From: Octopus bimaculoides
Taxonomy: Eukaryota
Direction of reading: 5' to 3'
Length of the DNA stretch: 64,000 nt
Assembly: GCF_001194135.2 (NCBI RefSeq)
Contig: NC_068982.1
Span: 128,975,852-129,039,851, forward strand
In this document: positions 10,301-37,116 of the stretch, piece after piece
How the letters are laid out: each line of letters begins with the position of its first letter
How positions within the stretch are numbered: position 1 is the stretch's first letter
Position numbers and translations under genes: made by a program
The notes under the pieces: model-generated
Databases searched by the model: none
Seen by the model: only the letters and a program-made list of their open reading frames with translations
Told to the model about the DNA's origin: nothing

Positions 10301-11712
10301 TTACTAACCAACACAAAGGAATGACCGAAAATAAAAGCTAGAAATCTTAAGTGATTGCAATTTCTTATTGTAAGAAGTCACTTTAAATATTTCTTTATCC
10401 TATAATAAAAAGTTATTTCAGCAAAACTTGAGATAAATTCATGAGTGATCTATTTAAAGGATTTGACTTAATTCAAAGAAAAACTAATACTTTCAGGGTT
10501 ATATGCTCATTTATATTCATGAGCACATGCAGGTATACATGTACATGCACACACACACACACGCACACACGCACACACACACACACACACACACAAACTT
10601 ATATGCACACATATGTTATCACATATATATACAGAAAATATTCTCATACATTTGTGTGCATACAAATGCACACACATGTCATACAGTTTCAGATAAGGTA
10701 AGGTAAAAATATAAAGGAAATACCATAAGGTAAAGGTTGTCCATTCCTTAACCATTCCACTTTCATTGTGGGATCATTAATAGGAGTCAGCAGACATTCC
10801 AAATGTGTGCGGTCATATTCAGCAACTTCAACATCTTTCAGTTGAGTTCTGAAAACAGGCCTCTTTTTCTTGCTTTTATTGTATATAATTTCAGTTGGAT
10901 GTACACTGCGTCGGCGTATGTGAGATTCTTGTTTCATTTTCTGTAATTGTCTAAAATTTAAAAAAAGGAGAAAAATATAGTCAACCTTTCTATTCCAACA
11001 TAGGTAAACTAAGACATATCAAACTTAATAAGATTGACATTATGCAGAATATTAACCTAGTCTTTCAAGATGCATTAGTGGCCTTGTAGATAAGAATATT
11101 ATTACCATTTGTTCATACACAGAAGTTCCTAGCTCGTTCAAATCTACTCAAGTACTTTGAACACATCCAAGATCATAATCCTGATTAAAGATCAGACCAA
11201 TGGAAATGCAGTGTAAATTTAGATATCAGAAAAATTTTCAAATTTAATGATGAAGTTAATAGTACAAAAACTTTTAATTTTATTAATATTTCCTCTTAGA
11301 TATTTAGATATTCATAAACTTGAAGATATTAAAAAAATTACTTACATCTCAGCTTCCATCTTGAAAAGATCATCATGTGATACTCTGAAATTTTTTTAAA
11401 AGTTCATATATTAATATTTAGAAACAATGACAATAATTAATTTGAGAAAATTCATATATAGAATATGTAAAGTATGCATTGCATATTTTAAATATTGTAG
11501 TAGTTAGAGAATATAAATGTAGAATTCCAAATATATGAATTCAGGTTCAGTCAGGAGAAAAATGTTGAACTTTTTCTTTGTAGTTAGAATATATTCTTGG
11601 ACATACTTTAATCAGTCAAACTTAAAAACTTGTATTCAACAGTTATTGAGTGTCTAACATTAGGAATAGTTCCTTTCAAGTGTAAAAACAGCACCTCTAT
11701 AAAATTAATTCA

Positions 11713-11783
<71 letters not shown>

Positions 11784-14700
11784 GGCAGCAAAATAGCAGA
11801 ATCATTAGCATGCTGGGCAAAATGCTTACTGGCATTTCATCTATCTTTATTTTCTCATTTCAAATTCTGCCAGGGTCAACTTTGCCTTTCATCCTTTTGG
11901 GGTCGATAAATTAAGTACGAGTGAAACACTGGGGTCAATGTAATCGACTAGTCCCCTCCCCTAAAATTTCAGGCCTTGTGCCTTTAGTAGAAAGGATTAT
12001 TATTATTATCTCTTTATCACAGGTTTTGTTGGAGCTTCTAGAGTCTTACATGCATAGTGGGCTTGCTACCTGCAGCCTACGGTATCATGCTATCCATTCT
12101 TTTCAGCTATCTAATACTTTTATGATTATTCTGGCCATGCCAAGGAGGCAAAACTCTTGTAGCTGTTCTACTGGGCACTCTATTCCAATTTACATTGTAT
12201 TTCCCTTGATGTCTTCTGATACTGTTCTCAAGAACCTAACAATAATTGGCACTATCTTCACCTTCTTCATTTTCCATAGCCGGCCTACTTCATACTTAAG
12301 AGGGTTGTATCTATCTATTTATCTTTTCACCTTCCTTCATGACTATTCGTGGGTCAAAGAGGCATGCAGCATCAAGTATATAACATATGTGGCACATCTT
12401 GTCCACCACCACTAGGTCCAGTCTGTTATGCTCTAGCACCTGATCTGTTTGGATTGGGAAATCCCAGAGGATTTTGCCAATTTCTGACAGAATAGTTTTA
12501 ATGTCATTTTAATTTTTAGGTGTTGTTTGGATGGAACCAAAATGGGGGAATCATAATAGTCAACTTTTGTAAGTGCAATGGATATTTTTTTTACTGAATT
12601 TGTTTCTATTGAATGCTACATATACATTATTATAAGTTTAATCAGCTGTTTCGAATAAGAATTTCTTAACTAGATATAAAGCTTTTAAAAACCATACATA
12701 TGCACATGACAAAAATTCAAACTCACAGATCTAACATGCAAAACAAGATTAGAAAAGTCAGTAGCTCTTAAACAGATATGGAAATGAAGTGGATACAATT
12801 AGAAAACAATGCATAAAAATTATCTGTTAATATTCAAGGTAGCCTTATCACATAGAGTAAAATCCTACTTGTTGGTCTTTAGTTATTTCTTAAGCCTACA
12901 CCATTCAAAATAACCATGCAGTCAGTACTGTCAAAAGACTAACAGCAAAATAATGTCTATTGAAATACTGATGAAAATATTAAAAATATATTAATAAATG
13001 TATTAGATTTCAATTCATAAGTGTAATAATTTCATTTTATTCCTATACTGGCAGAGGTTGGATATAGCATCCATTTGTGTGCTTTAATCTTGTCTTGGTT
13101 CATAATATATTGTTCAAATGCATAGATCTGATCCAATTCATCACAACCTCTTTGACTTCTATATACCACAGTAAGTTACCATCAACTCAACAATCTTTTA
13201 GGCATCACTCATTTAAATTACATAGTAATGTATTCAACTCAGCAGCATAAATTATGTCAATCTTCATTACAAGTTCACATCGCACCTCCAAAGGACCATA
13301 CACCAACTTAATCTTCTCTGTCTAATGCCTTTTTTATGTTGCATTCCATACTAAATATTGGACTCATAGAACACCCAAGTAGTCCATAATTGTGCATACT
13401 GTTGTTTATTCAAATTCACATGATGTACCTATCAATTTATCTGAAATCTTGCTGCATCTTTTGTACATATATTGCTTGCACATATTTACACAACATATAA
13501 CTGCTATCTAAATGTATTCTATTTTGTCCAGCAAGGCCAGTTTTCATATTATTGCCCAGTAACATTATTATGTTCACTTTTATGTTTTTGGCTCAAACCA
13601 CTTGTTCAGATTTTAAACTTCTTCCAAAGACTTTGAATTCATTATGCAATAAACAACTATTTCTAAACTTCCTTGTGATGGCTTTAATGACTTGAACAAA
13701 GGAAATATGGCTAACAACAAAATGTAAGTAAACACCTAAGTAATCATTAAATCCTTTACTTAAATTTCATAGCGGTCTTAATACCTCTCATGAACCATTC
13801 ATCTATATCTAGTAATGTGCATAGCTATTCACTCACAAGTGAGTATGACTTAATAATTGTTTCTAATTGTGAGCAGACAGAGACACCTCTTCTGCCCCTC
13901 CACCCTTGACCCAATGGAACATTAAGAATGTGACAGCTGGAAAGAGAGTGCTGTCCCAGTGCTTGACTTGTACACAATTTCAACTGAGGAAAGTGGAGTA
14001 ATGTAAAACAAAATGGATCATGATTCCAGACCAGTAATGAAACTCTTGACCTTCAGACTTTCAGACTAAATTAATTCATGCCCATAACAAGTAATATGAG
14101 GCCACAAAATGATAGTTTTTTTTTTTACTGCGGATGTATTTAAATTTATACTTAAAAAAAAGCAACATTCAAAAGAGTTGAATTAGCTGTATTAATGGAA
14201 AGTATTAGTTTTTTCACAAAATAATGTGTGAGTGTATATATACATATGTATATACGTATATACGGTGGCACTCCATCAGTTACGACGATGAGGGTTCCAG
14301 TTGATCCGATCAACAGACCAGCCTGCTCATGAAATTAACGTGTAAGTAGCTGAGCACTCCACAGACACGTGTACCCTTAATGTAGTTCTCAGAGAGATTC
14401 AGCATGACACAGTGTGACAAGGCTGGCCCTTTGAAATACAGGTACAACAGAAACAGGAAGAGTGAGAGAAAGTTGTGGTGAAAGAGTAAACCACCCCCAC
14501 CCCACTGCCACAGCCTCATGGAGCTTTAGGTGTTTTCACTCAATAAACACTCACAGCGCCTGGTCTGGAAATCAAAACCATGATCCCACGACCACAAGTC
14601 CACAGANNNNNNNNNNNNNNNNNNNNNNNNNNNNNNNNNNNNNNNNNNNNNNNNNNNNNNNNNNNNNNNNNNNNNNNNNNNNNNNNNNNNNNNNNNNNNN

Positions 14701-17700
14701 NNNNNNNNNNNNNNNNNNNNNNGAGAGAGAGAGAGAGAGTTTGGGTTTTGGAAGTGAATAGAAACCAATTTTAAGGAGGGTTTTTTTAAGAAAAGTTAGG
14801 TTAGTTTTTCTAATAAAGTAAATGAACAGGTTATTACAGAAAGCTGATGAAAAGCTGAAGTTAGAAACTTGAACTAACAGTTAGAAAATTGAAATGCATG
14901 AGTAGTAGGATGGATATTCCAAAAAAAAAACACTTTACACACATTTTAAAAACATGGACTTTGGAAGAATAACAAAGAGGATACAACAAAATGCATAGAA
15001 ACAAACATAATGAATTTTACTATACAATGTCATGATATCAATTTTGGCTGATGCACATGAAGAAACGGTATATAAATTAACCAAATGTCAGACTGATATG
15101 AAAGCTTCTCACCATTGCTAACACTAAATATAAGGGTGATATTTATAGAGAATTTAATATTGTTTAGTGATGCAAAATATTTTGCTCTGGAAAGAAAAGC
15201 AATTCTACATGAATCCATAATTACATTTATTATATGAGGTCACCAAAAGATGATTTTTTGTTTTTCTTCAAAAGGTATTACTTTGTATGCTCAAAACAAG
15301 ATCTTTCAGTTGGGTATTATTTTGATGCTTTGAGAATACAAAATAACAATCATCTATTTGTATTCATGAAAAAAAAAAGAAAAAGGACTTTGAGGATACA
15401 GGAATAAAAAGGTAAACTACACTATTCAAAATTTACAGTAACATTATCATAAGTATCAATATTTATTTTGATTAGTTGTCAAAAATGTTTGGTTAAAACC
15501 CAACAGTATTGGTGTTATTGTGTTATAGGTCATTGCACAAATTATATTAGACACAGTGTTTAAAACTGACTGATACTGTTAACTGTATCAGTTAGAGTGC
15601 CTTATGCAAAAGTTCAAACCTTGCAGTCTTTTCTTCCATTAGTGCTTTATAAACTTCACTATTTGCAGCATTCCATGGAGTTTTCACATTTGCATTAGCA
15701 ACTTTTTCATTGTCTGTTACCGGTTTGGGGCTTCTTTTCCTATATAAGGGAGATAGTGAGGCAATTCTAATATTTTTTTTTGTTTTGTTTCTTTTATTAT
15801 TTTTTTTTCACACTACTGACATTTGTAAGATTTAAGAAATGTTTTCAGACTTTAATGAAAATATTTTCTAAAGTGTGATACAACCCTACATTCATTTTCT
15901 TTGTTGTTCGTATTTCTAAAAGATAAGCAAATATATTGCTCTTTCTCAAATTCTTGAATATATTCTGTATAACAGAAATATTTAGGTATAATTCAAGAAT
16001 CTTTGAAATCTAATATTTTGATTTCAGTATCTTTATACAGATGTCATCATAAGTAGAGGTTTTGGAGTAGCTAGCAGTAAGAGCAACCATAAAATAAATT
16101 CTTTCTAATGTTTTGAAGGTTCACTAGTAGTTGTTAATAGCTCCCATTATCAAAGTCACCTAATTAGTAGGTGAGGAAAGTGTTTGGAAGCATATTAGCA
16201 AGAGTAAGAACATAATGGAGAAAATTTGGGGAGCTATTACTTCTGCTGACAACAAGGAGATCCTTTCTTTCAGTATAGGGTAGATTGTATGATGCTTCTG
16301 TAGGTAGAGTGATACAGCATGAAAGCAAAAGAAAGGCACTGACTGAGGAAGATATGCAGAAGCTGAAAAGAAATGAAGCATGTATCTTCCACAGGATATG
16401 TAATGTTGGTGTACATGAACTACAGAGCACAAATGAGCTGAGAGAAAAACTGCGTATAAGAAGAGTCAGACATCATGTACAAGACAGTAGAATGCACTGG
16501 TACAAGCAAGTGATGTATATGGAGGGTGACAGCTGGATAAAGAACTGCCAAGCGATCCAATTGGAAGGAACCTACAGAAGATTACTGAGGCCATCCAGCC
16601 ATGCAAGCATGGAAAAGCAAATATTTAAACAATGATAATGATGAATGAGCAGTGGAAACATCATTACCATTCAATGTTATAATTTAATTAAAGCTGCTCA
16701 CATTATAAATATAACAGAAATATGCAGCTATTGAGGCAAATAATATTAGTAAATATAGCATAAGAAGCTAAACTCAATTTTTGCTTAAAATATGAATTAA
16801 AGATTCAGGTTCTAAGCATTTCTGTTATAAATACAATCTTATTTATGAATTACTTTTTGTTTTAGTAACAAGTATTCAATGAATTTACCTTTGAGGTGGT
16901 TTTGCAACTGGTACTTTTGCAACTGGAGTAATTGGTGGTGGCTTAGGAGCTGCTGGTGGCTGTACAGGCTTCTTGGATAATTTTGGACTTTCAACATGCT
17001 TAATAACTGGAGGTGCTGGAATAATAGGAGCTGGTTTTGGCTCAGGAACTGGTGCAGGTTTTGGTGCAGTATATGGTTCCACTTTGCTGTAATGTGATTT
17101 TAGTTGCATTTTAGAATATTTATTATTTAGTACAGTCACTTAAAAACAAATATTTCATGGAGACTAAACTCACTGAATTTTAAACTAAATTAAGGGATCT
17201 TATAAATTTTAGATAGATAATGTCAAGACTTTAAATTGAAGAAATCCCTAGCTATGGGTTGTGTACAATTCATGATCATTTTGCTTCAACAAGCCAATAG
17301 AACTATACATTACAACATTTACTTTAAACACACTTATCTGAACCAAGAAAACACAAACATACGAAAATACCTGCAACATTGTTCCTATAAACCATAAATT
17401 TATAATAGACTTGAAACATTTTATAATGAACTACAAGTAAATTCTGGAGCTCTCTACTATCTAAATTCACTTTCATTGAGGTCTGCATGCAAGCCCTTGA
17501 AACAAAATCAAACTACAAAAGAAAATTTGATGTGACATATTCTGATACTAACACAAACCTTCATACAAATAAAGATGCATACAGTAACTGAAGATATCAA
17601 ACTATTGGTTTACATTGGTTAATATTTTTATTATTTCATTTCCAAATAATCATTGCCATCCTCACCTTTAATGTCCACTTTCCCATGCTTGCAAGAGAAG

Positions 17701-20700
17701 ATGAGTTTATTGAAGCAAATTTTTATGGCTTGATGCTCTCCTCACCTGTTTCCAAGCAAGGTTATAATTGCCGGTGGCCAGATATGCTTTTGCAGAATAT
17801 CAGAAATGAATGATACTTCTTGTATGATAGGTGGTACTCGCACACTATGTCAAGACAAGGACACACACACATTTATAATCTTCTGTCTACCAAATCTGCT
17901 CACAAGGTTTTGGGTCAGTCCAAGGCTATAGTAGAAGATACTTGTCCAAGGTATCATGTCAGACTAAAACTGAAACCATATGGTTGGGAAGCAAACTTTC
18001 TCAACCACACCTTTTTACAATCTTTTCATTCTATTGTGATAGACCTGAATTTTATTTAATTACGTATTAAATCTTAAGTTTTAAAGTTTTTAGAGAGTTG
18101 TAAATATTAAAATAATATTATTTTATAATTTCAGATTTAGTGTCTTGTTAATACTAGTAGACATTAGGGATCTATATTTTTCTTTTGTTCATATGAATTA
18201 TTTTATTTGGTAATCTGCACTATTTTTTATTTATCTGGATTTTCTCATTAATTCTTCCTTAACAACATCGTTCGTTCGTTTAACGTCCGCTTTCCATGCT
18301 AGCATGGGTTGGACGATTTGACTGAGGACTGGTGAACCAGATGGCTGCACCAGGCTCCAATCTGATTTGGCAGAGTTTCTACAGTTGGATGCCCTTCCTA
18401 ACGCCAGCCACTCTGAGAGTGTAGTGGGTGCTTTTACGTGCCACTGGCTATTTAGGGTTGCAACTCTAGCAAAACAATCACCATCATCATTGTTTTAATG
18501 TCCACTTTTCCAAGCATGCCTGGGTCAGACAGAGTTTATTGAGAGAGATTTTCTATGCCTGGATGCCTTTCATGTTGCCATTCTTACCTGTTTTCAAGCA
18601 AGGTAATATTTCCCCATGGTCAGACATATTTTCGCAGAATATTGGAAATGTATGACATTCATTTACAATAATCATGTGATGTCAAGACAAGGAGACACAA
18701 ACATACACACACATATATCCATATGTATGTATGCATATGTGTATGTGTGTATGTATGCATGTATGTACATGATGGGCTTCTTTCAGTTTCCATCTACCAA
18801 ATCCACTCACAAGGCTTTGGTTAGCCCAGGACTATAATAAAACACACTTGCTCAAGATGTACCACAATGAGACTGAACTCAAAACCTTGTGGTTGAGGGA
18901 CAAACTTCTTAACCACACATCCATGCCTGTGCCTACCCAGGAAAAAACACAAAGTGTTTAGATCCTTATTCAGTGATCTTGAAATGTTAATACTATACCT
19001 TTAAAAGATTATTGTGCAAGTGTTATACTTTCACTGCTTGCCATGTTATTATATTTCCATTATTAATTACTAATCCACTGAATAAAACAACATTATTTCT
19101 TTGAATAAAAGAAAGTATTTAAAACTTTTGGAAGGCATGAGACCTTGTGGTTATGGTGGTGCACTCGCTATTGTAAGATTGTTGTTCAGTTCCCAGATTG
19201 GGTTGTACTTTTGTGTTCTTGAGCAAAACACTTCATTTCACATTGCTCCAGTTCACTCAGCTGTAAATAACTTCAAGCAACAGCTGGGAAGTAAACCCTG
19301 CAACAGACCAGCATCCTGTTCAGGGGTCAGTTTTGTTATCTCAGTTCCTTATATGCCTTGGGAACTGGGTTAAACACCTGCCTTATGAATCTTTAAGACT
19401 CATGACAGATGTATGTCTAAGTAAGTTCCATATTTATTCTTATAACAATTAAACCTTATGTATATGTTGCATCAATATGCAACTGTCATGAAATCCACTG
19501 TTAGTTTTTCAAATATCAGATAAAAAGGTATCCTTTAAGAAAATAGCCTTCATGGAAATGTAAACATGCTTTTGCTTTTGTTTCGTTTTGGTGCTTATTG
19601 TGTTCTTATCCATAGATTCTTCATCAAGTAAATTGTTTCTTATAGAATACCTTATTCTATTGTATATCTCTGTGTGCATCTCAGTTTTAGAACAGGTACC
19701 CCACATTCTTGTATGTCAGTAGTGGTGGATAAAATTTTTGACATCAGGAAGAGTAGCCAACCGTAAAGCACTATCTTGAAAATGTTGATGATTATAATTT
19801 CGGAAGGTTTTTTTTCTTATGGTAATAGAAATTTCTATGCATAAAAATGTTCCTTCAAGAGTCACAATATTCTATCAATACCTCAAAGTAGCAGACTGGT
19901 AGCATTGATAGATCAATAAATAAACTGCTACATGATATTTAGTTATGTTTGTTTTTGAGTTCAAATACCCTCCTAGGATAACTTTATGTTTAATCTTTGT
20001 TGAAAAAAATAAGTACCCATCAAATACTAGGTTTCAAGCCTTTTCACTACTCTTAGAAATTTTATGACTACCTAGCCAGATTTCCTTAAGTCAGATGCGC
20101 TCTCTGTCATCAATCCTTGCCTGTTTTCAAGCAATATGATTTCCCCATGGCACGTTTTCATTAAATTTTGAAGAGTTTGATGATGATGCTTATTTACAAC
20201 TATTGTGTAATGACAAGAAAAGAAAAACACACACACACACACAAAATAGGCTTCTTTTACTTTCTGTCTACCATATCTACCACTTACCAGGCTTTAGTTG
20301 GCTCAAGGCTATAGCAGATGACACTTGACTAAGTTGCCATGCAGCGGGACCAATCCCAAAACCATGTGGTTAGAAAGTAAACTTCTTAACTGCACACCTA
20401 TGTTTGCACTTGAAGTATGTCTATAGATATTAGGACTTCATTACATTGAACAAAGCAAGCCAACTGTGTTTACACTAATTATGCTTTTTTATAAGAATTA
20501 AATTCAGAAACTAAAAGAGAAGCTTAAAAACTGATTGTAACCACTCCAAATAAATGAATAACTAAGTTTTGCCCATTAGTTTCAGCATCAAGTGCATAAA
20601 CAAACACATTGTAATAGTTGATAAACAATCTCTATTGTTGATAAAAATTTATGCGCTTATGCCTTGACAGTTTAAATACTACACCTTCACTGGCATGGAT

Positions 20701-23700
20701 TTTAACAATTAAATTATTATTTTAACGTCTAGGAGAAAGTAATACAGAGCATAATTTGATAGTTATCTGGTCGTAAGATTATATTTTGGTTTAAAATTTT
20801 GGAACTATGAAGTATCAGGTGACATAACATCTACTATTCTTTTTTATGTGAAAGACTTTTAAAAAATAAGGAAAAACAACAGAATAATATGTTGCTTAAT
20901 ATAATAATTGTTTTATGTTGCCATTTAATTTTCTATCATTTTATATGCTCTTAAGAAAGCATGTTTGATTATAATGGGCTACTCACACTTAAGAAATATA
21001 TTTACTTTGTCTTGCCACAAGATTTTTATCATAACTTGTGTAATTTTTCATATTTTTTTTTCAGCATTTACTTTTCCATTCACTATTGTGGCGATGTATA
21101 GCTGAGTAGTAAGGGTGTTGCCCTTATGACTAAGATCGTGACCTTGATTCCCAGACCAGGCAGTGCATTGTATTCTAGAGCAAAACACTTCATTTCATGT
21201 TGCTCCAGTCCTCTCAAGAGTAAACAAGTTCCAGCAATACCTGAGAAGTTAATGATGTGATTGATGGACTGGCATCCTGATCAAGAGGGAGTGGTGTAAT
21301 CTCAGCCACTTATATATCATGGAAACCTGGATAAGCTTTGACTTTATGAGACCTAGCACTTATAACAGGCCTAAGTCCTAACTTTTCCTTGCTTGCATAT
21401 GTCAGTACACTGTGGCAGAGTTTTCTAAGGTCAGAGCCATTCCTATCACTAACACCCACTTATGTCCAAGGGAGGTAATAATCTCACAGTCTCGACACAT
21501 TTTGTGTAGAAAACTGGAAACAAATGATACTGTATGAATGAGGCTCTTGTTTCAAAGGTTACAGGACAAGTCAAGAAGCCTAGACATGTCTTTGCAGAGA
21601 ACTGCAAGCAAACACCATTAGCTAAACAATTGTTTACAATCAGTGAACAAGAATACTGTCTCCTATCTTTTCTATTACTACTGTAATAGTCGCTGTTCTC
21701 AGGAGCTGGCTGATCTTCTACTTCTGCCCTTTAGGTACTGTTATCTCACTTGTCTCTGCATCTCCCATTAGCCTTGGTGCATCCAACATCCTAGCCCTTT
21801 GTAACCACTATGCCCTAATTCAGTAAATGAAAAAAGTAAGACATAAGCTGTTTCTTTTCATTAACAGCTTAGAATAGATATCTATGTGCATTTTTTAAAA
21901 CCTATCAATATATATTGCTTTAATGTATCTCTTTTATAATGGCATATCATTTTGAACATGCACACACTGTTTATGTTTGTGTAGTTAATACTGAATGCAT
22001 ACAGTCTTCCATGTCACTTACTATAGAAAATATAGCAGTGGGTAAAGACACTTACAAATATACACTATATATTTTTTTTAATGTGAACTTTTAGTCAACA
22101 AGGCCAGGAAAATATATTTTATCCCTTTCTTAACCTAGCTCTTTTCTGTTTTCCAACTATTTTTTTTTCTGGCCCTGCCTCCCTATCCTTTCTCTCTCTC
22201 TACAACTAAGTCAGTATCATACACACACTCAAACACAATCATAAATATATGATAGGTGATACAAATAACTAAATTGAAATCACTCTTAACATTGTGATGA
22301 GATGACTGACAATAGCTGTTTGGACGCTGGTGATTTAGCATGGTTGACTGGATACTGAACCTGTTTTTGGTGACAGTACTATTTAGCACTGGAGACAAAC
22401 ACACACATACATATCAAAATATACACATAGTGTGAGAGAGATGGGGAGAGAGAGATTATAATTTATTAACTGAATAAGATTGACACTAACTCTTTCCCTC
22501 TCTTCATGCACACAGAGAAGTATGCTGACACACACACACAGTGAGAGAGAGGGGGGGATGAAAGTAACATTAAAATGTTTGATGTCAAATAAGTCAGCAT
22601 CGAATCAGCAATGCAAAATAGACTGGACCAAAAAGGGCTGTGGCAAAGCATCTCATACTCCTCAGAATTAATGGAAAAACATTTTTGATTGACGCTCTAT
22701 TATAGTCAACCCAATGAAAGATAATTTATGTAAGAAAAATTAAATAATAACCTTGGTTTAGTCAATTCAGGAGCTGGAGTAGGTTTTCTCACTGGCTTAT
22801 CTTCATCCCTACATAGAAAAGATAATCATTTCATCAATGTATGTGAACCATTAAATGAACTTGCAATACACATGGAAATTCCATGGTTATTTTAAAAACT
22901 ATAAGACCGTTGAAAGTTTATAGAAAACCATGAATTACGTAATTTCTTTTAAAATTGCATGTTTTCTTGAGATGGTGCGAAGTCCACATAGGTAATACTG
23001 AAGGTGAGTCTTAGGATAGAACACCTTTGAAAACTAAATTCTTTGTTACACACTTGTCACTTCTTCTAACTAGAAAGTTATCTATCTTTACATCAAGAAG
23101 TGAATGTATTCTAGAAAGAGTTAAATACAACTGTCCATGAGAAAATACTGGTTCACTTCTCTTCATGTTTCCAATGTAAATCATGTTATGAAAATTATTT
23201 AAAATGTGTTGAAAAAATAATGTAAACAAACTAGAAGAAATAATTTATCTAAATATTATTCTGCTATAGTATGGTTACATTGGTAACACATTACCAAATA
23301 TCAATACACTGTACTACAGCTTTATTTTCATATCAGAGAAAAGTTTATATGACTGGCCTTGAACCCACAGTCTCTGTGAATGGCACACAGTAGCTGCTCA
23401 ACTGTACTGTGGATTCTAAAATAATATTTAGCAGTAATATATGTATAGATATGACAATTTAAAATTATTTATCTCTCAGTCAGTTGTTTTATGGATAATA
23501 TGTAAATGTGTCCATAATAGATTATGTTCATGATATTGTTCCATAGTTTGTCAAGTATCTTATAATATAAATGGATATTGTAAAATAGATTAATTATATC
23601 TTCAGTTTCATTCCATAGTTAAAGCTCGTATGTAGATCATAGCAGAATATTATTGAGTGTATCTAGAGCAAGATTTCAACACTGAGCCTGTAAAAGTGAT

Positions 23701-25122: not shown

Positions 25123-25203
<81 letters not shown>

Positions 25204-26860
25204 GACAGTTGCTAACAAAATCATGTTATCTAACAAAACAACACATCATAAAAATGTTAGTAATGTAATAACAGTTTAAATGTTTTAGTTTCTACGTCTG
25301 AAATATGTTTACATTACAAATAATATCAACCCTTTTCCTTTTGTATTTTCTACTTCCTCAGAAATAAAGTATGATCTGAATAATAATGTAGAATTAATCT
25401 GAAATAATGTAGAATTAATGCTGAAATAATTTTACACATTCTAATATCTCACATGAACCAATGAGGAAGCTTCTATACTACCAATTAGAAACAGAAGCTA
25501 ACTCTCCCTCACTTAACACCCATCCATCTTAAAATAAGATACATAGGTTAACTCAGTTCTAGATGACCTGTGAATGAAAATAGGATAGGAATGCCTTTAA
25601 CACAGGTCTAATCTGGTGTCAAAACAACTACTACATTATCCTCTTTCAAAAATGTATTTCTTAAATATAATCATCATCAACATCATCGTTTAATGTCCAC
25701 CTTCCATGCTAGCATGGGTTGGACGATTTGACTGAGGACTGATGACCCAGATGGCTACACCAGGCTCCAATCTGATCTAGCAGAGTTTCTACAGCTGGAT
25801 GCCCTTCCTAACGCCAGCCACTCCGAGAGTGTAAACATTTTTAGCATTAGAAGGCATCCAGCTGTAGAAAGCAAGCCAAGGCAGACAATTCCTGTCAAAC
25901 CATCTGACCTATACCAGCATGGAAAATGGACATTAAATGATGATGATGATGATGATGACACTTGTGACTCACCTAAATTAATACAAATCGTTATTTTTTC
26001 AAGAATCAAAGCACTAGAAATCATATAATTAAATATTTTAGATTCCTAAATTTCATAGAATTAAAATTACGACTTCACTCTCAATAAATGAGAGGTTGAA
26101 TCTGTGTAATATAATTCATAAACAAAAAAATATGAAAATGAAACAAAAAATGGTTAATACATTACTCATTACTTGATTGGCTAATAACTAAGTTTATATT
26201 ATTTTCTCATTAATGTAAATGCTAATAGACACTTGCATGGACACGTAAAGTGATCCAAATGGAAGGAATCCTTGAAAGAGGAAGTCAGAGGAAGAGAGAA
26301 ATAAGTAGATCTGTTGTGGCTAAACCTCACAAAAGGACATAATAAATGACTGCAACAAATGACTAGCCACAGACCCTGTAAATGCTCATCCAACACAAAC
26401 AAGTAGGAGTAAATGGACATGTTGGTGATAGTGGTTGCAGTGATAATGATGGTGAGGATGCTTTTAAAGTATATTCTACTACATACTGAGAGTATATCAA
26501 GAATAATGAGAATATAACAAGAATTGGATTTTTAGATTAAAAAACCGGCTACTACATTTGAAAATATTAAATTATATATATTATGAAATAATTCAAATAT
26601 AAAATAAATGCATTTATATATGATATATTCAAATTTAAGCATTGTTATGTATGGCAACTATCTAGTTTGTGTCAGTTTATGCAACACTTAGTAACTACAA
26701 CGTCATGCTTTAATTCACAATACTGAAAACTAGATTGCAAAATCAAAAACAAAAACATTTTATAAAAAACAATATCCAAGTATAAAGAAAATTCAAAATG
26801 GGTGAACATGAAATAAAAAACAAACTTTATTGAAGTTTTTTATTGCAATGTACATACAAC

Positions 26861-26898
<38 letters not shown>

Positions 26899-27132
26899 AT
26901 ATATATATATGTGTATTCTTTCTTTTTTATTCTTATATTTGTTTCAGTCATTTGACTGAGGCCATGCTGGAGCACCGCCTTTAGTCAAGCAAATCGACCC
27001 CAGGACTTATTCTTTGTAAGCCTAGTACTATACTATTGGCCTCTTTTGTCAAACCGCTAAATTACATGGATTAAACACACCAGCATCAGTTGTCAAGCGA
27101 TGGTGGAAGAACAAACACAGACACACTAACAT

Positions 27133-27183
<51 letters not shown>

Positions 27184-27344
27184 AGGCTTCTTTCAGTTTC
27201 CATCTACCAAATCCACTCACAAGGCTTTGGTCGGCCCAAGGCTATAGTAGAAGACACTTGCCCAAGGTGTCATGCAGTGGGACTGAACCTGGAATCATGT
27301 GGTTGGTAAGCAAGCTACTTACCCCACAGCCACTCCTGTGCCTA

Positions 27345-27375
<31 letters not shown>

Positions 27376-28514
27376 GTAACTTGAATCAACATGAGACAAA
27401 TAGAGAAAACTCAATACACAGAAAAGTAATTATTTTCATATAGATTTCAAGGTGGTAAAACTGAATAACATAATATTCAAGATTATTAAGTCTCAAAAGG
27501 GCTGTTTAGGTAGTGTCTGTACCACTATTTCCATTTCATTTCAAACTTTCATGAAACGAGTGACTAGTTTCTGTCATGCACCATCTAAAGCAATATAAGA
27601 GTGATACTTTATGGCTAGTTTATTGAGATTATTTTCCTTTAGCTGGCAATGAAGTAAATAGTGCTGAGTAGCTTAAATAGATCTTTTTAATTTTTACAAT
27701 ATTGGGAGCAGAGAAGGGGATGGGTAGTCTCATATGTCTATGAATCAGATATAAATGAGTTAACTGTGGCTGTTTTTGCTTAATTTTGTTGCATGAAAGA
27801 TTTCAGAATTTTAATAAATACTTGTCAAAATGGTAGTATCTACCACAAAATTCTAATAGCACGTTTAAATATTTAAATGAGGTTTCAACGCTGTCAAATA
27901 GTAATCTTTTCTGATGTGCATAACTGAATAATAATGAACAGCATTAAAGCCTCAATTAAGTATTTAAACATAGAATCAGAATCTTTGACAGATGCAACCA
28001 CTTTAGTAAGTACCTTTTAGCTTGACTACTTGTAACTAAATGATACTGTTCCAAATAATCTTGTTAAACTTTCAAGTTCACCTATAAAGTGCTCAGTACT
28101 GTGTGCCCCCAAAGGAAATGATTCCAACAAGCTAGCTATGAATTATTCCTCCTTACATTACATTGAGTTTAACAGGAATCTAATGAAATATTTGTCTTTC
28201 AGAATTTTGAAATGGAATGGAGATGTACTGGTATATAAATCTGTTTAAATGAGCCTATTGAAACATAATAATCCTGGATATTGTTATGCTATTCCACTGG
28301 TGAAACTTTAACAATTGTAACCATCCTGAAAGCAATATTAAATAATATTGATAGAAAGGTCAACAAAAGAAAGAAATAGACCTTGATATTATGTAAATAG
28401 AGGAATTAATCTGTAAATAATATGTGACAATTATTCGGTAGCCATGATAAACCTCCGAGTTTTGGATACCGGGGTTTTATCATGGCTACCGAATAATTGT
28501 CACATATTATTTAC

Positions 28515-28552
<38 letters not shown>

Positions 28553-31500
28553 TCCAAACCAACAAACGAAATATATATACAATTAGTTTTGGAAAATGTT
28601 ATGGTCATCATAAACACAAATAAAACTATGTTATTTCATATTTTTTTCACATAAACATGCAAATTTGGTTTCTATAAATGTAAACCGAATTTTATTAGAA
28701 AAAATTTAAAAGACAATGAGATAAAAAAAATCATTGGGAAAAGCCACACATAAAAGAAGCAGTCAATGAAAATGAGAGATCAACATGACTTCCTAAAGCA
28801 GGTTGTGAAAGATAGAAGTCTTGAAAGGAAAAAACTATCTACTTTAATGGGAAGAGTACAGTATTATTTAGTAGGTAAGTTTTCTAAATATATATACTAC
28901 AGTGAACTAAATAATGCATTACAAAACATGTTACAATTCAATAAGTATACTTTGATATAATAAATCTACTGTTATATAACAAAATATCAATTCAAGCATT
29001 CCATATGTTACAATTAATATTTGTTATTTCTAGCAATTTAGATGTTATAAAAAAAAATAATAGACAATTTATAAGAGAAATATTATGACTAATAAAAAGT
29101 CAATATAAACTAAACAGTATTCATTCCAGGGTGTAAAAAATGTCAGTTCTAATGCTGAAATGTTGCATATAGGGAATATATTACCATATTCTGTTTATTC
29201 AAATTTGAACATTTGATGTTTTCAAGAAGTCTACTTTTTGATAAACAGAATGCAATTATTGATGCAACTTTGCATTAAACTAATAATATTAAAAGGATGG
29301 AATAAAGTTATGGTTATGGATTTGGAGGGAAACCTGCTTAAGGGATGAAAGTAGCATGTTTCAACAAGATGGATTTGTTTAATGTTAATTAAGGATCATA
29401 CAAAATATTTTTCAGCATGAATAGCACTAACATCTAGATCCATCACAATATGAAACAAACCTCATTATATCCACTTGATCAACAATTTTGAGCACAGCGC
29501 TTCCTATCTCAGAAGCATAGCTAATCTGTTGTACTGGTCCTTCTTCCTGAATTTCATAGCTGTTGTTGGAAGAAAGATATTTGCTATCATAAATAATTAC
29601 ATTCTCAACTAAATAATGTTTAATATTAAACATGCTTTCCATTGATTAGATGATATTTTTATTGTGATTTGAAGAACTACTTCTACTACTCCATTTTGAA
29701 AAGTTATGAAACAATTTTTTAATAAAAGAATAATAATATTGTGACTAAATGAATAGAACCATTTATAAAAAGATTAACAGTTTAATTGTGCTTTTGTAAT
29801 ATCATGTGCAAAAGTAAAATATGTATATAAATGAGAAAAACAAACAGATTATGAAATGGACATAATGTATTTATTATAAATAAAAGTAATCTACAAAGTA
29901 TGAATAATGAATTATTATAAATTAGATTCCTTAATGATTTACACTCAAACCATCAATATCTAAATGTTGACAAAATATTTTTATATTGTTTTGTAACTAC
30001 ATCAACATGCATGTGTAATAAACTGCTTATGAACCTTGGTGGTGAATCTCCACGTGGCAATGTTGATTCAGCTGGAACTGGAACTGGAACAGGAACAGGA
30101 GCTTTAACAGGTTTCACTTTTTTGTCGGGTGAAATTAATTTCTCCTGAACTGGTGCAGGTTTTGGTACAGGTTTTGGTATGAATTCTGGTTTAGGTTGTA
30201 CTCTTGGAAGTGTTGCTGGTGGAGGCAGTGGTTTGCCAGATTGATCAAAAATCAACTTCGCCTCTGCTACAGATGGAGGTTTGAATGCTGGTTCGTCTTC
30301 AGTAGGCTGACCGTCAACTGGTGTTTCAGTTGTTGGTGCTGGTGCACAAACAACCATTTCATCTATAGGAGCTGGAATCTCCTCACTGTGAAATACGATA
30401 GACATTTTTTAAAATGCATTTTATTGTTTTATTAACAATATTTTCATTAAAATAACAACTAATCATTTTTCATTTCAAAATAAATAGAATAATTTAAACT
30501 TAATATTAAAGTAACTTTGAAAATAAAATATAACCTTAGAGATAATCTTAAAGCATTTTTAGTGCTCACCTAAATAGAATAATTGTAAAGAAGCTCTAAC
30601 ATATATACACATGTAATTTAAAATAATATATAGTATAGAGTCACAAAGTTGGCCAATTATTGTAATAACATATAATAGCATTCTGCTATGTTTTGTTATC
30701 ACAATCTTATGGTAATTACTTGGCATAAATAGTGACAGTCTTGGTCAAAATTATTGTTTTACAAGTCAATAAATTTATTTTTGTCTGTGGTTGGCTAATT
30801 CCCAAAATAAACATATTCTAACTGATTTGTGGCTAGCCAATAAATACTATATCATTAAGGTAATAGAACATATTAATTAGAACTATCAAAAGTTACTTTA
30901 TAATTAAAAAATATTTTTTAGATATAAAACAATGCATGCATTCTAAAGTTTCAGAATAAAATCATTCATGCTGTAAGTCAAACTTATTCACCTTTTTTTG
31001 ATCATTAGTAATAATTAAATTGTTTTAGCTACTCATTTACAATTGTCAAATGAAAATTATGCTATATTTTACTGTGTTTGTTAGATAAGTAAAATATAAT
31101 TAAACATTTGTTTTTATTTTTCTATAACATAAAGTTTCAGCTACTAAGATATTTTTCAAGGACTCCACTAGGACTACTAGTAAACTATTTTCTTACATAG
31201 AATACAAAATTACTTCTTATCTTAGGAAACATGAAAAACAAAATAAGTTACAATTGTTATTATGTAAGACTTTGATATGAGATAAACATGAAAAACTTCT
31301 TGAAAAAAACTACCTTTTTATTAATTACATTCACCTGAAGCTAAATATTCCTCACTGGCTAGACCATTCTTGTTGCATCATACCTTAAGTCATTAAGAAT
31401 GTTTAATCTACTAAACATTTATGTACATGTGCAATATACATTATTCTATTAATGTATACTATTAAGAATGACTTAATTCAACCTTCATTTGAAAATAAAA

Positions 31501-34500
31501 TCAATACCATTCATATGAGGCAAGCAATAGTTTTCAATTTGTGAAGTGGTTATAATTAAACTATGAAAAATATTGACTAATTTCAGGTATCAAGGCTGAC
31601 AACAGAATATTTTAATTTTCAAATATTTTTCTTTGGCTATAAATGTGTTCTACTCTTTTTGCATAATTCTAAGTTCCTTGACTACTGGAAATAAGGTTAA
31701 CCAATTATCATGCTGATAAAACCTATTGAAGCAGAAACATGTGTCCATAATTGTCCTTTTATCTCCACACAATAAGCCTGTCCTTTTCATTAATGGCATA
31801 TTAACTTTAAACAATTCTTAATTCTTGAGATTAGCATGTATTCTTATATGGAATTGGTTTTAAATAACTTTTGGTAATTATGACACATCCTCAATAGGAT
31901 AATTCTAATAAATCAAGAATTTATATTGTATGGTATTTAGTATGCCTGTATTGTCTATGTCATGTTAAATGTATAGTTGGAGACAATAATCAACACATAA
32001 GTTATATGAAGCGAATTACTTTCAAAGAGAGTTTCACATATAGTATTGAATTTTTTAATTATTAAAGACTTTCTAGGGTATGTTCCACAGTTAAGTGATT
32101 AATGATACAGAGAAATGTGTTCAATCACCTCTATTGATTGTTTTTCTTGATAAATCTTCAGTCCCCCAATTACAACAAATCAGAAAAATATGAAAATCCA
32201 GCAATGCTTTGCTAATCTTTACATATGTACAGCAAATAGCTTTGAATCTAAAATATGTCACACTGAAACAATTGACTAAATTGGTTTTAGTATGATGTCC
32301 CAAATGTTGCAAAACATTATCATTTGTTCTAGTAACATTTTGGTAACATGGGTAAATAAAGAAAACAAAGGCTAGAAACAAATATAAAGGGCTATTGGTA
32401 TATATTAGCTGGTACATAAATGATGTGCAACACAATTAATATGTAAAAACCATAAAAGAATCACAAATAAACAAATCATCAACGAGTTTTATAAAAAAAA
32501 TAACTAAACTAAATTTTAAACTGTTGGTACTAAAGCTGATTAATAATTAAATAAGCTTCTGAACAAAACTTTAAAGCTTTTCTCATTAAACTTCTATAAA
32601 AAAAGAAGACTTTCAAACTCTAGAAAGTATTAGTACAAAGTTTAAATTAGTTTGAGTTTTAAATAGTTAGCATTTTTAAATCAATGGACTATTTCAGATG
32701 GTAAAATTACTTTAGCATACTACTTCTAAGTCCATCTTTATGTCAAATAACAAAAGTTCTCTAAATGTACAGGTTTAGAAATATAACAACTTTTATAAAA
32801 TTTTAGTAAATATCAGTGAAATAAGACAATATATGGAAAAAGTAAAAAATTAATATATTTTGTTAATTTATTTGAGATGTTTCTATTATCCTAAAAATTA
32901 AAGATTTTAAAATGTTCTTACATACTTTGTAAGAGTTTTAATTTAATTAGAATTAATATTATGTGTGTGTCACACACACCTAATTAGAGTATACTATGAC
33001 ACTAAATTAATGAGAGTTAGTGTCACCAGTCTTTAGATGTTGTAAATTGAATGTAAATTAGATATTTCTTTTACTTCACCATAGAATGAATATTTGCCAC
33101 AGTCTGCTACATAAATTATATTTAGCAATTTTCAGATTTCATCCAGATTTCTGTCAGTCTCTACAATTTGATGCCAACATATTCAAAATTTCTCACATCT
33201 GAAAGTGCACATAAACTATATCTAAATCAGTGTAATTTTACACTCACGTTTCCATGCCTGCATGGGTTAGATAAGTCAGTTCTTATTTGGAGTTACTAAG
33301 TCCACCACCACTACCACCACCCCACTGATGGACCATGGACCATGTCTCACTCGTAAATTTTATAAATCAATATCAAATATTAAAACATTAAGCAAAAACA
33401 ATATTGTGGGAACATAATTCCATTAACGGTTTTAAAGAATGTCATGGAATAAAGAATTTCACAATATTTGAAAAGCACTTATTGAATTATCAATCTGTAA
33501 CTAAAATTATATAGTAACAGAATTCACATTTCAAATTTTTTGTTAATTTAACTATTAAATAGTTAAATCAATGATAACTGAATTATGTTAAGTGGCTGCA
33601 TGTAGATATGAAAATATATGAGTTAGTAGCCACTAACTCATATATTTTCATATCTACATGCAGCCTAACAATAATTTAGATACATAAGCCCAATAATAAT
33701 TTCAAGAATCTGCTTCACATATCATTTATCTGTTATGGATTCATTTATAAGAAGAGAAAGGAGGAAAAAATAAGAAATCCTATTTTCCTCTTTAATCAAT
33801 TATTTGTTTTTTTTTTGGGTTTTTTTTTTTGAAGCTACAAAGAATGTGTAGAATTTGAAAGAATGTGTTTGGAAAATTTTAAATAAGAAATTTAAATTAC
33901 TTTCTATGCAATTAGTGCAAGTAATTAAAAAGTGTTTCATTGCCAAACAAATCCTATTTATATTATATACTTTAACTGTTAGTTTATAATGTGGTAAAAC
34001 AAAAAGAGTAACAAACAAATGAGCTGAAATAGTTAAACTAACACAAGAAAACAACAGTTTAAACTAAAACAAAAACAAAACTGTCAAGCATAAAAACATG
34101 AAGAAATAAGATAAAATAAAAGCATGAAGATATAAAATTCAAGAAAACAAAACGATTTAAAATCTATTTAATAAGAATTAGCTGATTAAAAAAGATTACT
34201 AAATAAAATGACTCAGATGGAACTTCTTTCTGAATTAAAAAATGTGGTCATGTAAAACCTCTTATAAATGAAAATCTTTCTTTAGTGGTTGGATGGAATT
34301 TTAAATAGAACAGAATTATCAGAGGATATGTTTGCACTGCTTTAATCAATATATGTGTTATTATATTCTGTTCTCTGAATAGAATTGTAATTCTATTTTT
34401 CTTTGATGATTCCATGAGTCATTTTATTTACTCAGAACAAATAACACCAAACAAAATATTTTGTTTAAAACTGAACACAACATTCCCAACTAAAGATTCA

Positions 34501-37116
34501 GTTCGAACCTTCTGAGAGGATCTTCTCTCAAAAGTCGCAGAGTTGCACTGTCATGTTCTGTTGCATAAGATATTTGTTGAACAGGACCAATTGGTTGAAT
34601 TTCATATTTGCTAAATGGAAAAATATTAATAATTAACTTTCACTGCAATATATTCTACTTTCAATGCTCTCAAATAATAAGATTTACAATGAAAGTCATT
34701 CCTGATTACAAAACACAAAGCAATATTTTTTAATTATTATTTCTATGATATATTTAAAGAAAATTTCATAGAAAATGCTAAGCAGACTATATGATAATTA
34801 CCTACAACTTTTAATTGATGAAACAACAATAATCTGGTAACTGATCATTTCTTTCACATTAATGGCAAAGATGGAAATATTAAAGAAATATAAGTTGATA
34901 ATTTAAGCACTATTACCAGACGACAATTACAGTAAAAAAAACTAGAAAGTGTTGAGAAATCAAAAGGAAAATAAATCAAATCTATTTAATTTCACTTATA
35001 TATTACTCAGCAAGGAAATATTTCCGTCATAATCTGAATTAGAACATAATGTAATTGAAAAAGACAGAAATTTTTCCTGTAACTAAAAAGTAAACAATCC
35101 CAAACAAAATTGCATGGTATTGTTAAATAACATGAGTTTTATTTAAATTGAAGATCATAAGCTAAATTACATAAGGAAACAATCCTCCAAAACATCAAAA
35201 AATAACAAACAGAAAATATAGCAATGCTGATAATGATACTAATAACTGCCTTATTGTGAATTCAGAGTTTTGTTTTAAAATTCTTTTTGGTTAATAATGT
35301 TGCTGAAGGTAAGGAAAAGAAATATAGCTCTCGTCATATCTACATATAGCTAAATATAGAAATAAACAAAACAAAACCTTTACATAATTATTAATGAAAT
35401 AACAATATTTGTATTCAAATCCCTTATGCAGCCTCTGAGGTTCTGAAGTACCATGTTATTTGCTTATATAATTTCCAAAAGTATTTATAATAAAATAATA
35501 TAGAGAATAGTAACTTACGGAGAAGTACTCCTTCTAACTCCAAACATTGGTGCTTCTGGAGTTGTAATTGGTTGTTGTGGACCTTTTCCTAAAAAAAATG
35601 TGACAAAGTTTTAATGAAAGACAAAAATATGACATTAACTGGATAAAATGTGTAAAACAATATGCATTAAACAAATGTAGTGTCAGTGTTAGTATAAGTT
35701 AATTAACTATATAAAATTAATGTAGTAATGTTAAGCTACCTTAATAATGGATAATTTAAATTTTTTAACACACAATCATGGAATTTAACAAACATTTTGG
35801 AATTCAAAATTTAAAAAGATACTGTGAAATAATATTTAATGTAATTTATATAAATCAAACTTGTTACTGATGTGAAGGAATTCATAATTATCCTAGAAAG
35901 AGACCCAAACAATGGACTAAACTAATTATTGTATTATGAGAAAGACTTGTGATCACAGAGTTGTTCATCAGAAGTAACAAACTTGGCTCTATTTTGTCAT
36001 TTTTTTTGTATTGTCTGCATTATTGGTTAAGTGTTATTAGTTCAGAAGGTTTAAAAATTTCTTTAATTCTATCTCAAGACAATCTGGACAAATAAACATT
36101 GTGGCATCAGAAAGGTACCAAAACTATCTATGAATGTACTACTTATGAAAATTGTTACGGTCTTGCAAACACAATACATAAAACCTACCAATGAAGTTTT
36201 TACACATTATTATTTTATAATTAACACAATAGTAACAGATTGAAGAGTCTTTAGAGTATCTGTAACCATAAAAGCTTATAGTTTGTGACTGCAGTTCAAT
36301 ACTGAGAAGAGTTAATTTGAGATGCCCGTCTCAATAGCCTGGGGTTATTGATCTGGCTACATGTATTGGAAAACCAGGTTTAGATTTGTCAACCATGTTT
36401 GATTAGGCAAGAACTTTTGATTCAGTTCACAGAAATTAAGAGTTGTACAACAGGCTGTAGTTAACCCATCAAATTGGAGGTTTACCTCATGTAAAAGTAT
36501 ACACCCTATTTTAGTGATAGAAGCATTCAATGAAAAATGTTTTTTTATAGGTTTTTTCATTATGTTCATGTTCATTACCTTGTCAGCAAATATTTGGCAT
36601 CAACAAAAACTACCCCAAGAACATTATCTCAAAATAATAATGGAAATAATGGGTTGACTGACTAAAGAAAATGTTGGTGCTAACTTCAGAGAAGATGAAG
36701 CAAATACTCTTTTGAATCACTTTGTCCATGTATGAAATTATATATACATTTGTAAAATGTTTTACTATTAGAACTTTTGCAAAAATATCATATAAAAGAA
36801 AATTAGCAAGTAACAAGTTATAATAGATTACCAATAACATTGAGTCTAGCTCGTGTAAGGGCAGATCCAGCAACGTTGACAGCAGAACATTGAAACCAAG
36901 CTGAGTCAGCTGGTGTGGCATTTTTAATGGTCAATGTAGAACGGCCATTTTCAGTAGATATACTGTGGATTAAAGAGGCAAAAATTTTTTGAATTTGAAT
37001 ATGATGTTTCCAGATTATTAAAACTTAAGTTGTTAGATACTGTTACATAAACTACTTCTGAGTAAATTTAATTACAATTTGATATAACTATATGTCTTCT
37101 CTCTCTTTCATAAACA

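Follow-up and report, generated by a model that had tools for sequence, protein, structure and literature searches.

The window analysed here, a 64,000-nucleotide (nt) stretch of the Octopus bimaculoides genome (contig NC_068982.1, positions 128,975,852 to 129,039,851), carries on its minus strand part of a giant immunoglobulin (Ig) domain gene. Two of the Ig domains are joined by a linker in which we identify a row of mini-exons that all begin and end in phase 2. According to our analysis this is probably an inter-domain linker of a molluscan connectin/titin-sallimus gene, in which motif exons and PEVK-like spacer exons (rich in proline, glutamate, valine and lysine) form one phase 2-2 array that would have grown by duplication; six of its exons (C1 to C6) are well supported and a seventh (C7) is doubtful. 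As an array it belongs to the same-phase spring and motif exons of titin-type genes, a kind already known, and its uncharacterised part is a 33-residue motif, termed YEIQ below. What most deserves follow-up is the conserved YEIQ-GPVQQISY exon, which has no annotation, together with its weak donor site, likewise conserved.

Splice signals, homology and stop-free segments were combined to rebuild the gene as a 51-exon model, which with all linker exons included reads as a single open frame of 3072 amino acids (aa) with zero stops, in a window that is AT-rich (31% G+C) and contains one run of N (14607-14722). A Pfam scan of residues 1-678 of the spliced model yielded a Spectrin match at the model start (40.1 bits, cut-off 29.9) as well as I-set matches, and I-set was also matched on both flanks of the linker. 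Within the window, the 5'-most part of the gene consists of spectrin-repeat exons (62421-59371, minus strand) whose frame continues into the first Ig exons; from their sequence we take these spectrin-repeat exons to be the CCDC141/zormin-like part of a 'connectitin'-type locus. Behind the spectrin repeat the model continues as a long series of I-set Ig domains with proline-rich segments between them. By a reading of the model protein, the Ig domains of the gene number at least 20, next to spectrin repeats and PEVK segments, and the two domains that flank the linker are the 13th and 14th after the spectrin repeats, a count by eye and not by domain scan. The names 'Z6' and 'Z7' that the sequence-only reading had given to these two domains are labels only and imply no homology. 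In a sequence search of the PDB, the best relatives of both were titin Z1Z2 and I65-I70.

PEVK sequence has been defined by more than 40% P+E+V+K in a 250-aa window (10.1101/2024.09.30.615857). The linker of the octopus gene reaches 55%, in the 250 aa starting at model residue 2063, and is the most PEVK-rich part of the model. In Haliotis, the gene model directly upstream of the orthologous one contains Spectrin_SESTD1, Spectrin and Spectrin_7 domains followed by Ig (I-set) domains, and the downstream model is 6121 aa long. In vertebrates titin is located behind SESTD1 and CCDC141 (spectrin repeats with Ig), in Drosophila sallimus behind CG15822 and zormin, and the ancestral unit has been named 'connectitin' (Hanashima et al., PMC12198301). 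A titin reading of the octopus gene is reasonable on account of the titin-nearest Ig domains, the upstream spectrin sequence as described in that work and the PEVK content of 55%, and the same three observations uphold the earlier description of the gene as titin-like. We therefore regard it, on sequence grounds, as a giant muscle gene of the connectin/titin-sallimus type ('connectitin').

Table 1. Exons of the linker, its flanking Ig domains and the assembly gap, in gene order. Positions are those of the window; a slash marks the border between exon and intron.
Feature	Position	Strand	Remarks
Upstream Ig domain, exon 1 ('Z6-like' in the sequence-only reading)	37507..37666	-	I-set Pfam match on spliced product; high-scoring segment pairs with P0001 and P0002
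Upstream Ig domain, exon 2	36832..36962	-	phase-1 end TTATTG/gtaatc; same phase-1 end in Haliotis
C0, 70-nt adaptor, phase 1 in, phase 2 out, encodes GKGPQQPITTPEAPMFGVRRSTSP	35519..35588	-	ends CC/gtaagt
C1, 102 nt, phase 2-2, type-A YEIQ motif KYEIQPIGPVQQISYATEHDSATLRLLREDPLR	34509..34610	-	orthologous Haliotis exon also 102 nt, phase 2-2
C2, 351 nt, phase 2-2, proline-rich spacer with core SVAEAKLIFDQSGKPLPPP, end ..RGDSPP + AG/gt	30035..30385	-	top scan score; gastropod counterparts
C3, 99 nt, phase 2-2, type-B YEIQ motif YEIQEEGPVQQISYASEIGSAVLKIVDQVDIM	29461..29559	-	donor AG/GTTTGT
C4, 57-nt micro-exon, phase 2-2, DEDKPVRKPTPAPELTKP, 58% P+E+V+K	22752..22808	-	third-best scan locus
C5, 198 nt, phase 2-2, PEVK-like, 67% P+E+V+K	16889..17086	-	second-best scan locus
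C6, 120 nt, phase 2-2, KRSPKPVTDNEKVANANVKTPWNAANSEVYKALMEEKTA, helix-prone	15620..15739	-	fifth-best scan locus
Assembly gap inside the C6-C7 intron	14607..14722	.	N run
C7, candidate 39-nt micro-exon, phase 2-2, VSHDDLFKMEAE, doubtful	11346..11384	-	16.6 bits, decoy level
Downstream Ig domain, exon 1 ('Z7-like' in the sequence-only reading), phase 2 in, phase 1 out	10724..10950	-	orthologous to P0003, P0004 and P0005
Downstream Ig domain, exon 2	9948..10091	-	P0003/P0004 orthology and inferred junctions

Each of the exons C1 to C7 (Table 1) is bordered by an AG acceptor and a GT donor and carries one base of a split codon at its start and two at its end; together they amount to 966 nt, or 322 aa. 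The codons split across the linker are CC+N (Pro), AG+N (Ser/Arg) and AT+A (Ile), and because the junction codons are limited to CCN, AGN and ATA, no subset of the exons can create a stop. Exon skipping would be structurally possible, as the symmetric same-phase design permits it. Of 42 exons outside the linker, 12 are symmetric, which is close to the expected third, and phase 2-2 does not occur among them. The linker also holds four long introns of 4123, 6652, 5665 and 4235 nt, compared with a maximum of 1735 nt for the 44 other introns of the model, and the share of P+E+V+K in the spacers C2, C4 and C5 is 56-67%. On these points the sequence-only reading proved accurate: it had proposed the seven exons with their coordinates, lengths, AG/GT borders and phase 2-2 between the flanks 36832 and 10950, the stop-free combination of any subset, the position of the four largest introns and the PEVK-like nature of the three spacers.

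To compare the exons with the background of the surrounding introns, every stop-free AG..GT stretch between 10951 and 35518 was scored in any phase, which gave 7456 candidates. The donor and acceptor matrices were derived from 44 junctions and the codon log-odds from 42 exons, all of them outside the linker. The six best non-overlapping loci were C2 (114 bits), C5 (76.4), C4 (33.8), C1 (32), C6 (28.9) and C3 (25), and all six are in phase 2-2, a phase shared by just 612 of the 7456 candidates. The best decoy (25331-25375) scored 17.1 bits, and the scores of C4, C5 and C6 are 1.7 to 4.5 times as high. We read C1 to C6 as real exons that stand clear of the background. The seven-exon set of the sequence-only reading is thus retained for C1 to C6 and becomes doubtful for C7, which at 16.6 bits comes next after the best decoy.

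Protein searches were run with the Ig-linker-Ig segment, with the linker freed of its PEVK runs and with C6-C7 plus the Ig7-Ig8 part, and they matched gastropod, bivalve and other sequences at 47-57% identity. The closest relatives are P0002 of Haliotis rubra (annotated as 'myopalladin-like'), the MetaClust open reading frame (ORF) P0001, a Candidula fragment (P0003), a Pinctada fragment (P0004) and a Logan sequence (P0005). Following the orthologous Ig domain, both P0001 and P0002 contain an R-x-x-S-P segment, a YEIQ motif, a proline-rich SV(A/S)(E/D)A(K/R)x(I/M)F...PPP core and a second YEIQ motif, which is the order found in the window, and C0 to C3 are orthologous to gastropod exons. Counterparts of C0 that end in R-x-x-S-P with CC/gt are present in Haliotis and in a third species (L006), where the order Ig6a, Ig6b, C0 and C1 is kept with shorter introns. 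A Logan contig (L002, SRR23372229, 18.5 kb) contains the orthologous region from Ig6 through Ig8 and beyond with very short introns.

In the Haliotis genome (L001) the linker pieces are encoded by separate phase 2-2 exons, at least ten of them consecutive and nearly all ending in AG/gt, while C0 ends in CC/gt. The four YEIQ exons (YEIQ-1 to YEIQ-4) measure 102, 108, 102 and 99 nt; the spacers are a serine/proline exon of 150 nt, a C2-like exon of 387 nt and three others (123, 111 and 168 nt). There is also a large PEVK exon in phase 2-2, for which both ends are ambiguous (acceptor 20471 or 20492, donor 20980 or 20989) and the length is therefore about 490-520 nt. On this comparison the phase 2-2 layout appears older than the split between gastropods and cephalopods. 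It follows that the layout would be an inherited by-product of exon duplication and is by itself no evidence of regulation. Closer to the octopus, a sister-species contig (L003, about 93% identical) has kept the frame and both splice sites of C2 despite 30 substitutions and a 3-nt deletion, and its C3 differs at 3 of 99 nt.

The Haliotis region compared here is QXJH01000091.1, 943143-972010, where the orthologue is distributed over no fewer than four annotated models (2602, 399, 649 and 6121 aa). The C-terminus of P0002 is intron read-through (..RPRFVS followed by a stop), and the acceptor phase of the Haliotis Ig7a exon, apparently 1, conflicts with the preceding phase-2 donor. Three 'proteins' in UniRef/MetaClust correspond to minus-strand ORFs of the window (29427-29642, 29953-30405 and 34248-34415), two of which are single exons with intron read-through and one of which is purely intronic. 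Exact look-ups matched the C2 ORF, the C3 ORF and one intronic ORF and found no match for the window ORFs near C4, C5, C6, C7 and Ig7a. Public annotation evidently fragments the gene into stand-alone 'proteins' made of single exons or intronic ORFs.

C1 and C3 are paralogues that encode a 33-aa motif of the form (S/H)YEIQxxGPVQQISYxS(D/E)xExGxLRL, with the consensus S-Y-E-I-Q-E-E-G-P-V-Q-Q-I-S-Y-V-S-D-T-E-x-G-Y-L-R-L-V. A profile of seven copies was compared with 1.84 billion representative proteins and gave 55 matches, about 45 of them genuine; P0008, P0052, P0053 and P0061 were set aside as repeat or bacterial-type proteins with a chance resemblance. Most matches are short ORF calls around one exon, from many different assemblies. 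When they are aligned, similarity stops at (S/H)YEIQ on one side and at the terminal R on the other, beyond which the sequences are unrelated read-through of introns; the exon borders are therefore identical everywhere, the acceptor lying directly ahead of (S/H)YEIQ and the donor directly behind the terminal R. The motif exon is always preceded by an exon ending in R-x-x-S-P. Its copy number is two in the window, four in Haliotis and zero in L002.

The motif is undescribed and has no Pfam or PDB entry. Pfam searches at E up to 10 returned no family for C1, C3, C2 or C6-C7 and Ig families only for the whole segment, and Pfam likewise had no match in the carrier proteins P0054, P0007, P0038, P0033 and P0028. 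Likewise, the PDB sequence search matched the Ig parts only and left the motif unmatched. AlphaFold2, run on the C1 motif with a 39-sequence alignment, predicted neither helix nor strand at a predicted local distance difference test (pLDDT) score of 72, and C3 shares this motif. For C6, modelled from its single sequence, helices were predicted at residues 9-19 and 24-37 (pLDDT 73). The 'helical-motif' exons of the sequence-only reading accordingly lose C1, the one motif exon that was modelled and whose motif recurs in C3, and keep C6 with its two predicted helices. To judge from its predicted structure, the YEIQ motif looks like a linear docking motif. Whatever the splicing of the linker, a conserved motif of 33 aa recommends itself as a clear candidate for a hitherto undescribed binding site on a giant sarcomeric protein.

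Two further sequence elements may be mentioned beside the motif. C2 contains a second linear element (30157-30255, minus strand), SVAEAKLIFDQSGKPLPPP, which the sister species shares without change and which can be recognised in Haliotis (SVSEARKMFDKPDGAPLPPP), in P0001 and in Candidula; the polyproline run at its end could be a ligand of the SH3/EVH1/profilin type. P0054 is a 2123-aa single ORF on L005 (ENA ERZ26168041 contig, 55.9 kb) with many 'WKPTPF' repeats and without Pfam domains, and it carries three degenerate copies of one half of the motif, ..(I/V)HY(A/V)S(D/N)xExxxL(R/K)(I/L)...

The splice sites of the linker differ from those in the rest of the gene. Five of the seven exons have acceptors that score 1.2-3.5 bits, whereas the other acceptors of the gene, scored leave-one-out, have a median of 8.6 bits and reach 3.5 at the 10th percentile. 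Donors with T at position +3 (GTT) are likewise found in five of the seven, compared with 4 of 44 elsewhere (Fisher p about 0.001). The donor of the C3 type, AG/GTT(T/G)GT (29455-29460 of the window, minus strand), recurs in L003, in Haliotis (L001) and in the majority of single-exon ORFs, with R-F-V or R-L-V as its read-through; nearly all species sampled have it, and we interpret it as a sub-optimal 5' splice site that has been kept over a very long evolutionary distance. In a single pairwise comparison with L003, the intron between C2 and C3 (29560-30034, 475 nt) is 97.0% identical and exon C2 91.4%, and the adjoining intron parts are 88.9% and 94.9% identical. Taken together, the weak acceptors and the GTT donors are a hint in favour of regulated splicing, and we consider it somewhat likely, on the analogy of sallimus, that at least one of the exons is skipped in a regulated manner.

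In the model that we favour, the adaptor exon C0 would shift the frame to phase 2 and would be followed by the run of phase 2-2 mini-exons. Two kinds of module would alternate in this run, the 33-residue motif of C1 and C3 and the disordered proline-rich spacers of C2, C4 and C5 plus the helix-prone C6. We posit that the array grew by duplication of exon units consisting of a spacer and a motif, which would account for the one shared phase, the AG ends and the differing number of motifs in the octopus and in Haliotis. The product may be an extensible tether that carries docking motifs for some partner, with some exons probably skipped in some muscles, just as vertebrate titin and Drosophila sallimus skip spring exons. 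With 0.35 nm allotted to each residue, as in 10.1101/2024.09.30.615857, the 322 residues would have a contour length of at most about 113 nm when fully extended. The three PEVK-like exons alone would contribute about 71 nm, a modest spring compared with the PEVK regions of flies and vertebrates.

Several observations weigh against this model. Weak splice sites are also what would be expected of false exons, and the matrices by which they were judged come from only 44 junctions that are themselves inferred in the model. C7 is equalled or surpassed on all three scores by four candidates and stands at decoy level. The protein searches yielded no cross-species support for C4, C5, C6 and C7 and no cephalopod or transcript-derived product of the linker. 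In L002, the linker between Ig6 and Ig7 is rich in serine, threonine and proline and lacks the YEIQ motif. Finally, P0001 is a continuous 597-aa ORF that runs through C0-, C1-, C2- and C3-like parts; if it stems from a spliced transcript, the equivalents of C0 to C3 would be included together in at least one related mollusc.

This last point bears on the question of whether the linker is variable at all. In a constitutive linker the exons would be real and always included, the common phase, the AG ends and the odd donors would be relics of duplication, and the long introns would be laden with repeats. We hold this to be quite possible, but less likely than not. A layout that predates the gastropod/cephalopod split could persist without the need of a current function, Haliotis P0002 contains every exon within its span, the C0 to C3 equivalents of P0001 read as one ORF, and the big introns consist in part of dispersed repeat (for example, 1640 of 5665 nt between C4 and C5). 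Set against this, the splice sites of the linker are clearly weaker than those of the rest of the gene, the sub-optimal GTT(T/G)GT donor has been kept in very distant species, and comparable same-phase arrays of spring exons in titin and sallimus are alternatively spliced (10.1101/2024.09.30.615857). As to the view that the large introns are simply filled with repeats, repeats detected within the window cover just 3-29% of them, a lower bound and as such not decisive. A further doubt is that some or all of the small exons are prediction artefacts, that is, open frames bordered by AG and GT by chance in AT-rich introns. The interval does offer 612 phase 2-2 stop-free candidates, C7 scored below a decoy, and C4, C6 and C7 have no homologue among the gastropod proteins. 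C1 to C3, on the other hand, are kept across molluscan classes with conserved boundaries, and C4 to C6 exceeded the best decoy in a scan that was free of phase and nevertheless all came out in the fitting one, which leaves the artefact as a very improbable explanation.

The sequence-only reading went further and proposed an anchor-and-spring module with up to 128 isoforms, whose motifs bind a Z-disc partner such as alpha-actinin and which is tuned between cephalopod muscles. Its attractions are that any subset of the exons stays in frame, that the number of motif copies differs between species, and that skipping of C1 and C2 would restore an identical R-x-x-S-P/YEIQ junction. The motif is moreover situated close to the N-terminal zormin/kettin-like part of the gene, and in insects the corresponding part of Sls is associated with the Z-disc (PMC12198301; PMC2196178). 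No similarity to Titin_Z or any other Pfam family was obtained at E up to 10, no solved structure was matched, and C7 is doubtful. The alpha-actinin-binding Z-repeats of titin are helices, unlike the octopus motif, which is predicted to be neither helical nor folded, and full combinatorial use of exons is rarely realised, even in titin. The proposed Z-disc anchoring and the analogy to alpha-actinin binding found no support in these comparisons, and we judge the full scheme improbable. A related and still rather unlikely idea is that the YEIQ-GPVQQISY exon represents an ancient docking module of molluscan titin, with a copy number set by duplication and perhaps a regulated skipping through its weak donor, and thereby a counterpart of the Z-repeats. 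If it were true, lophotrochozoans would have a Z-repeat counterpart that sets the number of partner molecules held per titin across muscle types.

The preferred reading, an array of motif and PEVK-like spacer exons in a titin-type gene, can be compared with four known systems. The Z-repeats of vertebrate titin, which are differentially spliced, resemble it in being a short motif of variable copy number that lies between N-terminal Ig domains and is encoded by one frame-neutral exon per copy. They differ in that there is no sequence similarity (the Titin_Z profile of Pfam had no match in the linker at E up to 10), and the YEIQ motif has 33 aa, is not predicted to be helical and has its copies separated by proline-rich spacer exons. 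Palladin, myopalladin and myotilin are scaffolds of the actin cytoskeleton and the Z-disc, with intracellular I-set Ig domains and proline-rich linkers that contain short docking motifs. The octopus gene has in common with this family its I-set Ig domains and, between them, proline-rich linkers with short motifs, whereas its 20 or more Ig domains, spectrin repeats and PEVK sequence and the 6121-aa continuation in Haliotis place it on the scale of titin and sallimus. The link to palladin goes back to the name 'myopalladin-like' of the fragmentary Haliotis gene model P0002. A palladin or myopalladin identity, as this NCBI name implies, was rejected, since the Haliotis locus runs on into the spectrin and Ig model upstream and the 6121-aa model downstream.

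The PEVK region of vertebrate titin is likewise disordered, rich in P, E, V and K (as are C2, C4 and C5) and assembled from many small exons of the same phase, and part of it is lost by splicing in the heart isoform (10.1101/2024.09.30.615857). It is up to about 2,000 aa long, compared with about 200 aa in the octopus linker, which lies between the 13th and 14th Ig domains after the spectrin repeats (as counted in the model) and not in a defined I-band segment. The PPAK profile of Pfam had no match in the linker, and the likeness to PEVK is compositional only. The Drosophila Sallimus/zormin/kettin system is again a giant, Ig-rich muscle gene with spectrin-repeat sequence (zormin/CCDC141-like) directly upstream (PMC12198301), and Sallimus has proline-rich spring segments as separate exons between Ig domains. 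Flight muscle leaves out PEVK exons of sls that larval muscle keeps (10.1101/2024.09.30.615857). The fly has just a few PEVK exons, all of great length (about 1,700 aa are encoded by exon 32), whereas the spacers of the octopus have 19-117 aa and alternate with a conserved motif that is not of the PEVK type, and exon skipping in the octopus is putative.

Splicing of titin springs by muscle type is established in vertebrates and insects, and no comparable case in molluscs was found in the literature searched. The muscles of molluscs range from obliquely striated arm muscle through to fast tentacle fibres. If it is indeed a cassette array, the linker would give direct access to the question of how molluscs set the extensibility of their sarcomeres.

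Along the gene strand, a (CT)n run comes before the assembly gap of the window and a dispersed-repeat copy after it, surroundings in which assemblies typically break. It lies wholly within the C6-C7 intron and so leaves the reading frame unaffected. A small exon hidden in the gap is possible. Order and orientation on either side fit the orthologues, with P0001/P0002 collinear with 41313-29460 and P0003/P0004 matching 10979-1235. One or more short dispersed repeats, with three to five copies each in the window, occur in the introns (40-137, 2809-3122, 18276-18935, 25667-25833, 27111-27344, 38290-38437, 47584-47732 and 55045-55231). Scans of the window for Rfam families and tRNAs found nothing, so that these repeats have no tRNA-like or Rfam match, and a Pfam search of four intronic ORFs revealed no transposon domains. 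Other proline-rich exons are located upstream of the linker on the minus strand, at 46397-45967 (431 nt), 44800-44410 (391 nt) and 42138-42020 (119 nt). They are asymmetric, and the skipping of a single one would therefore shift the frame, unlike that of the linker exons.

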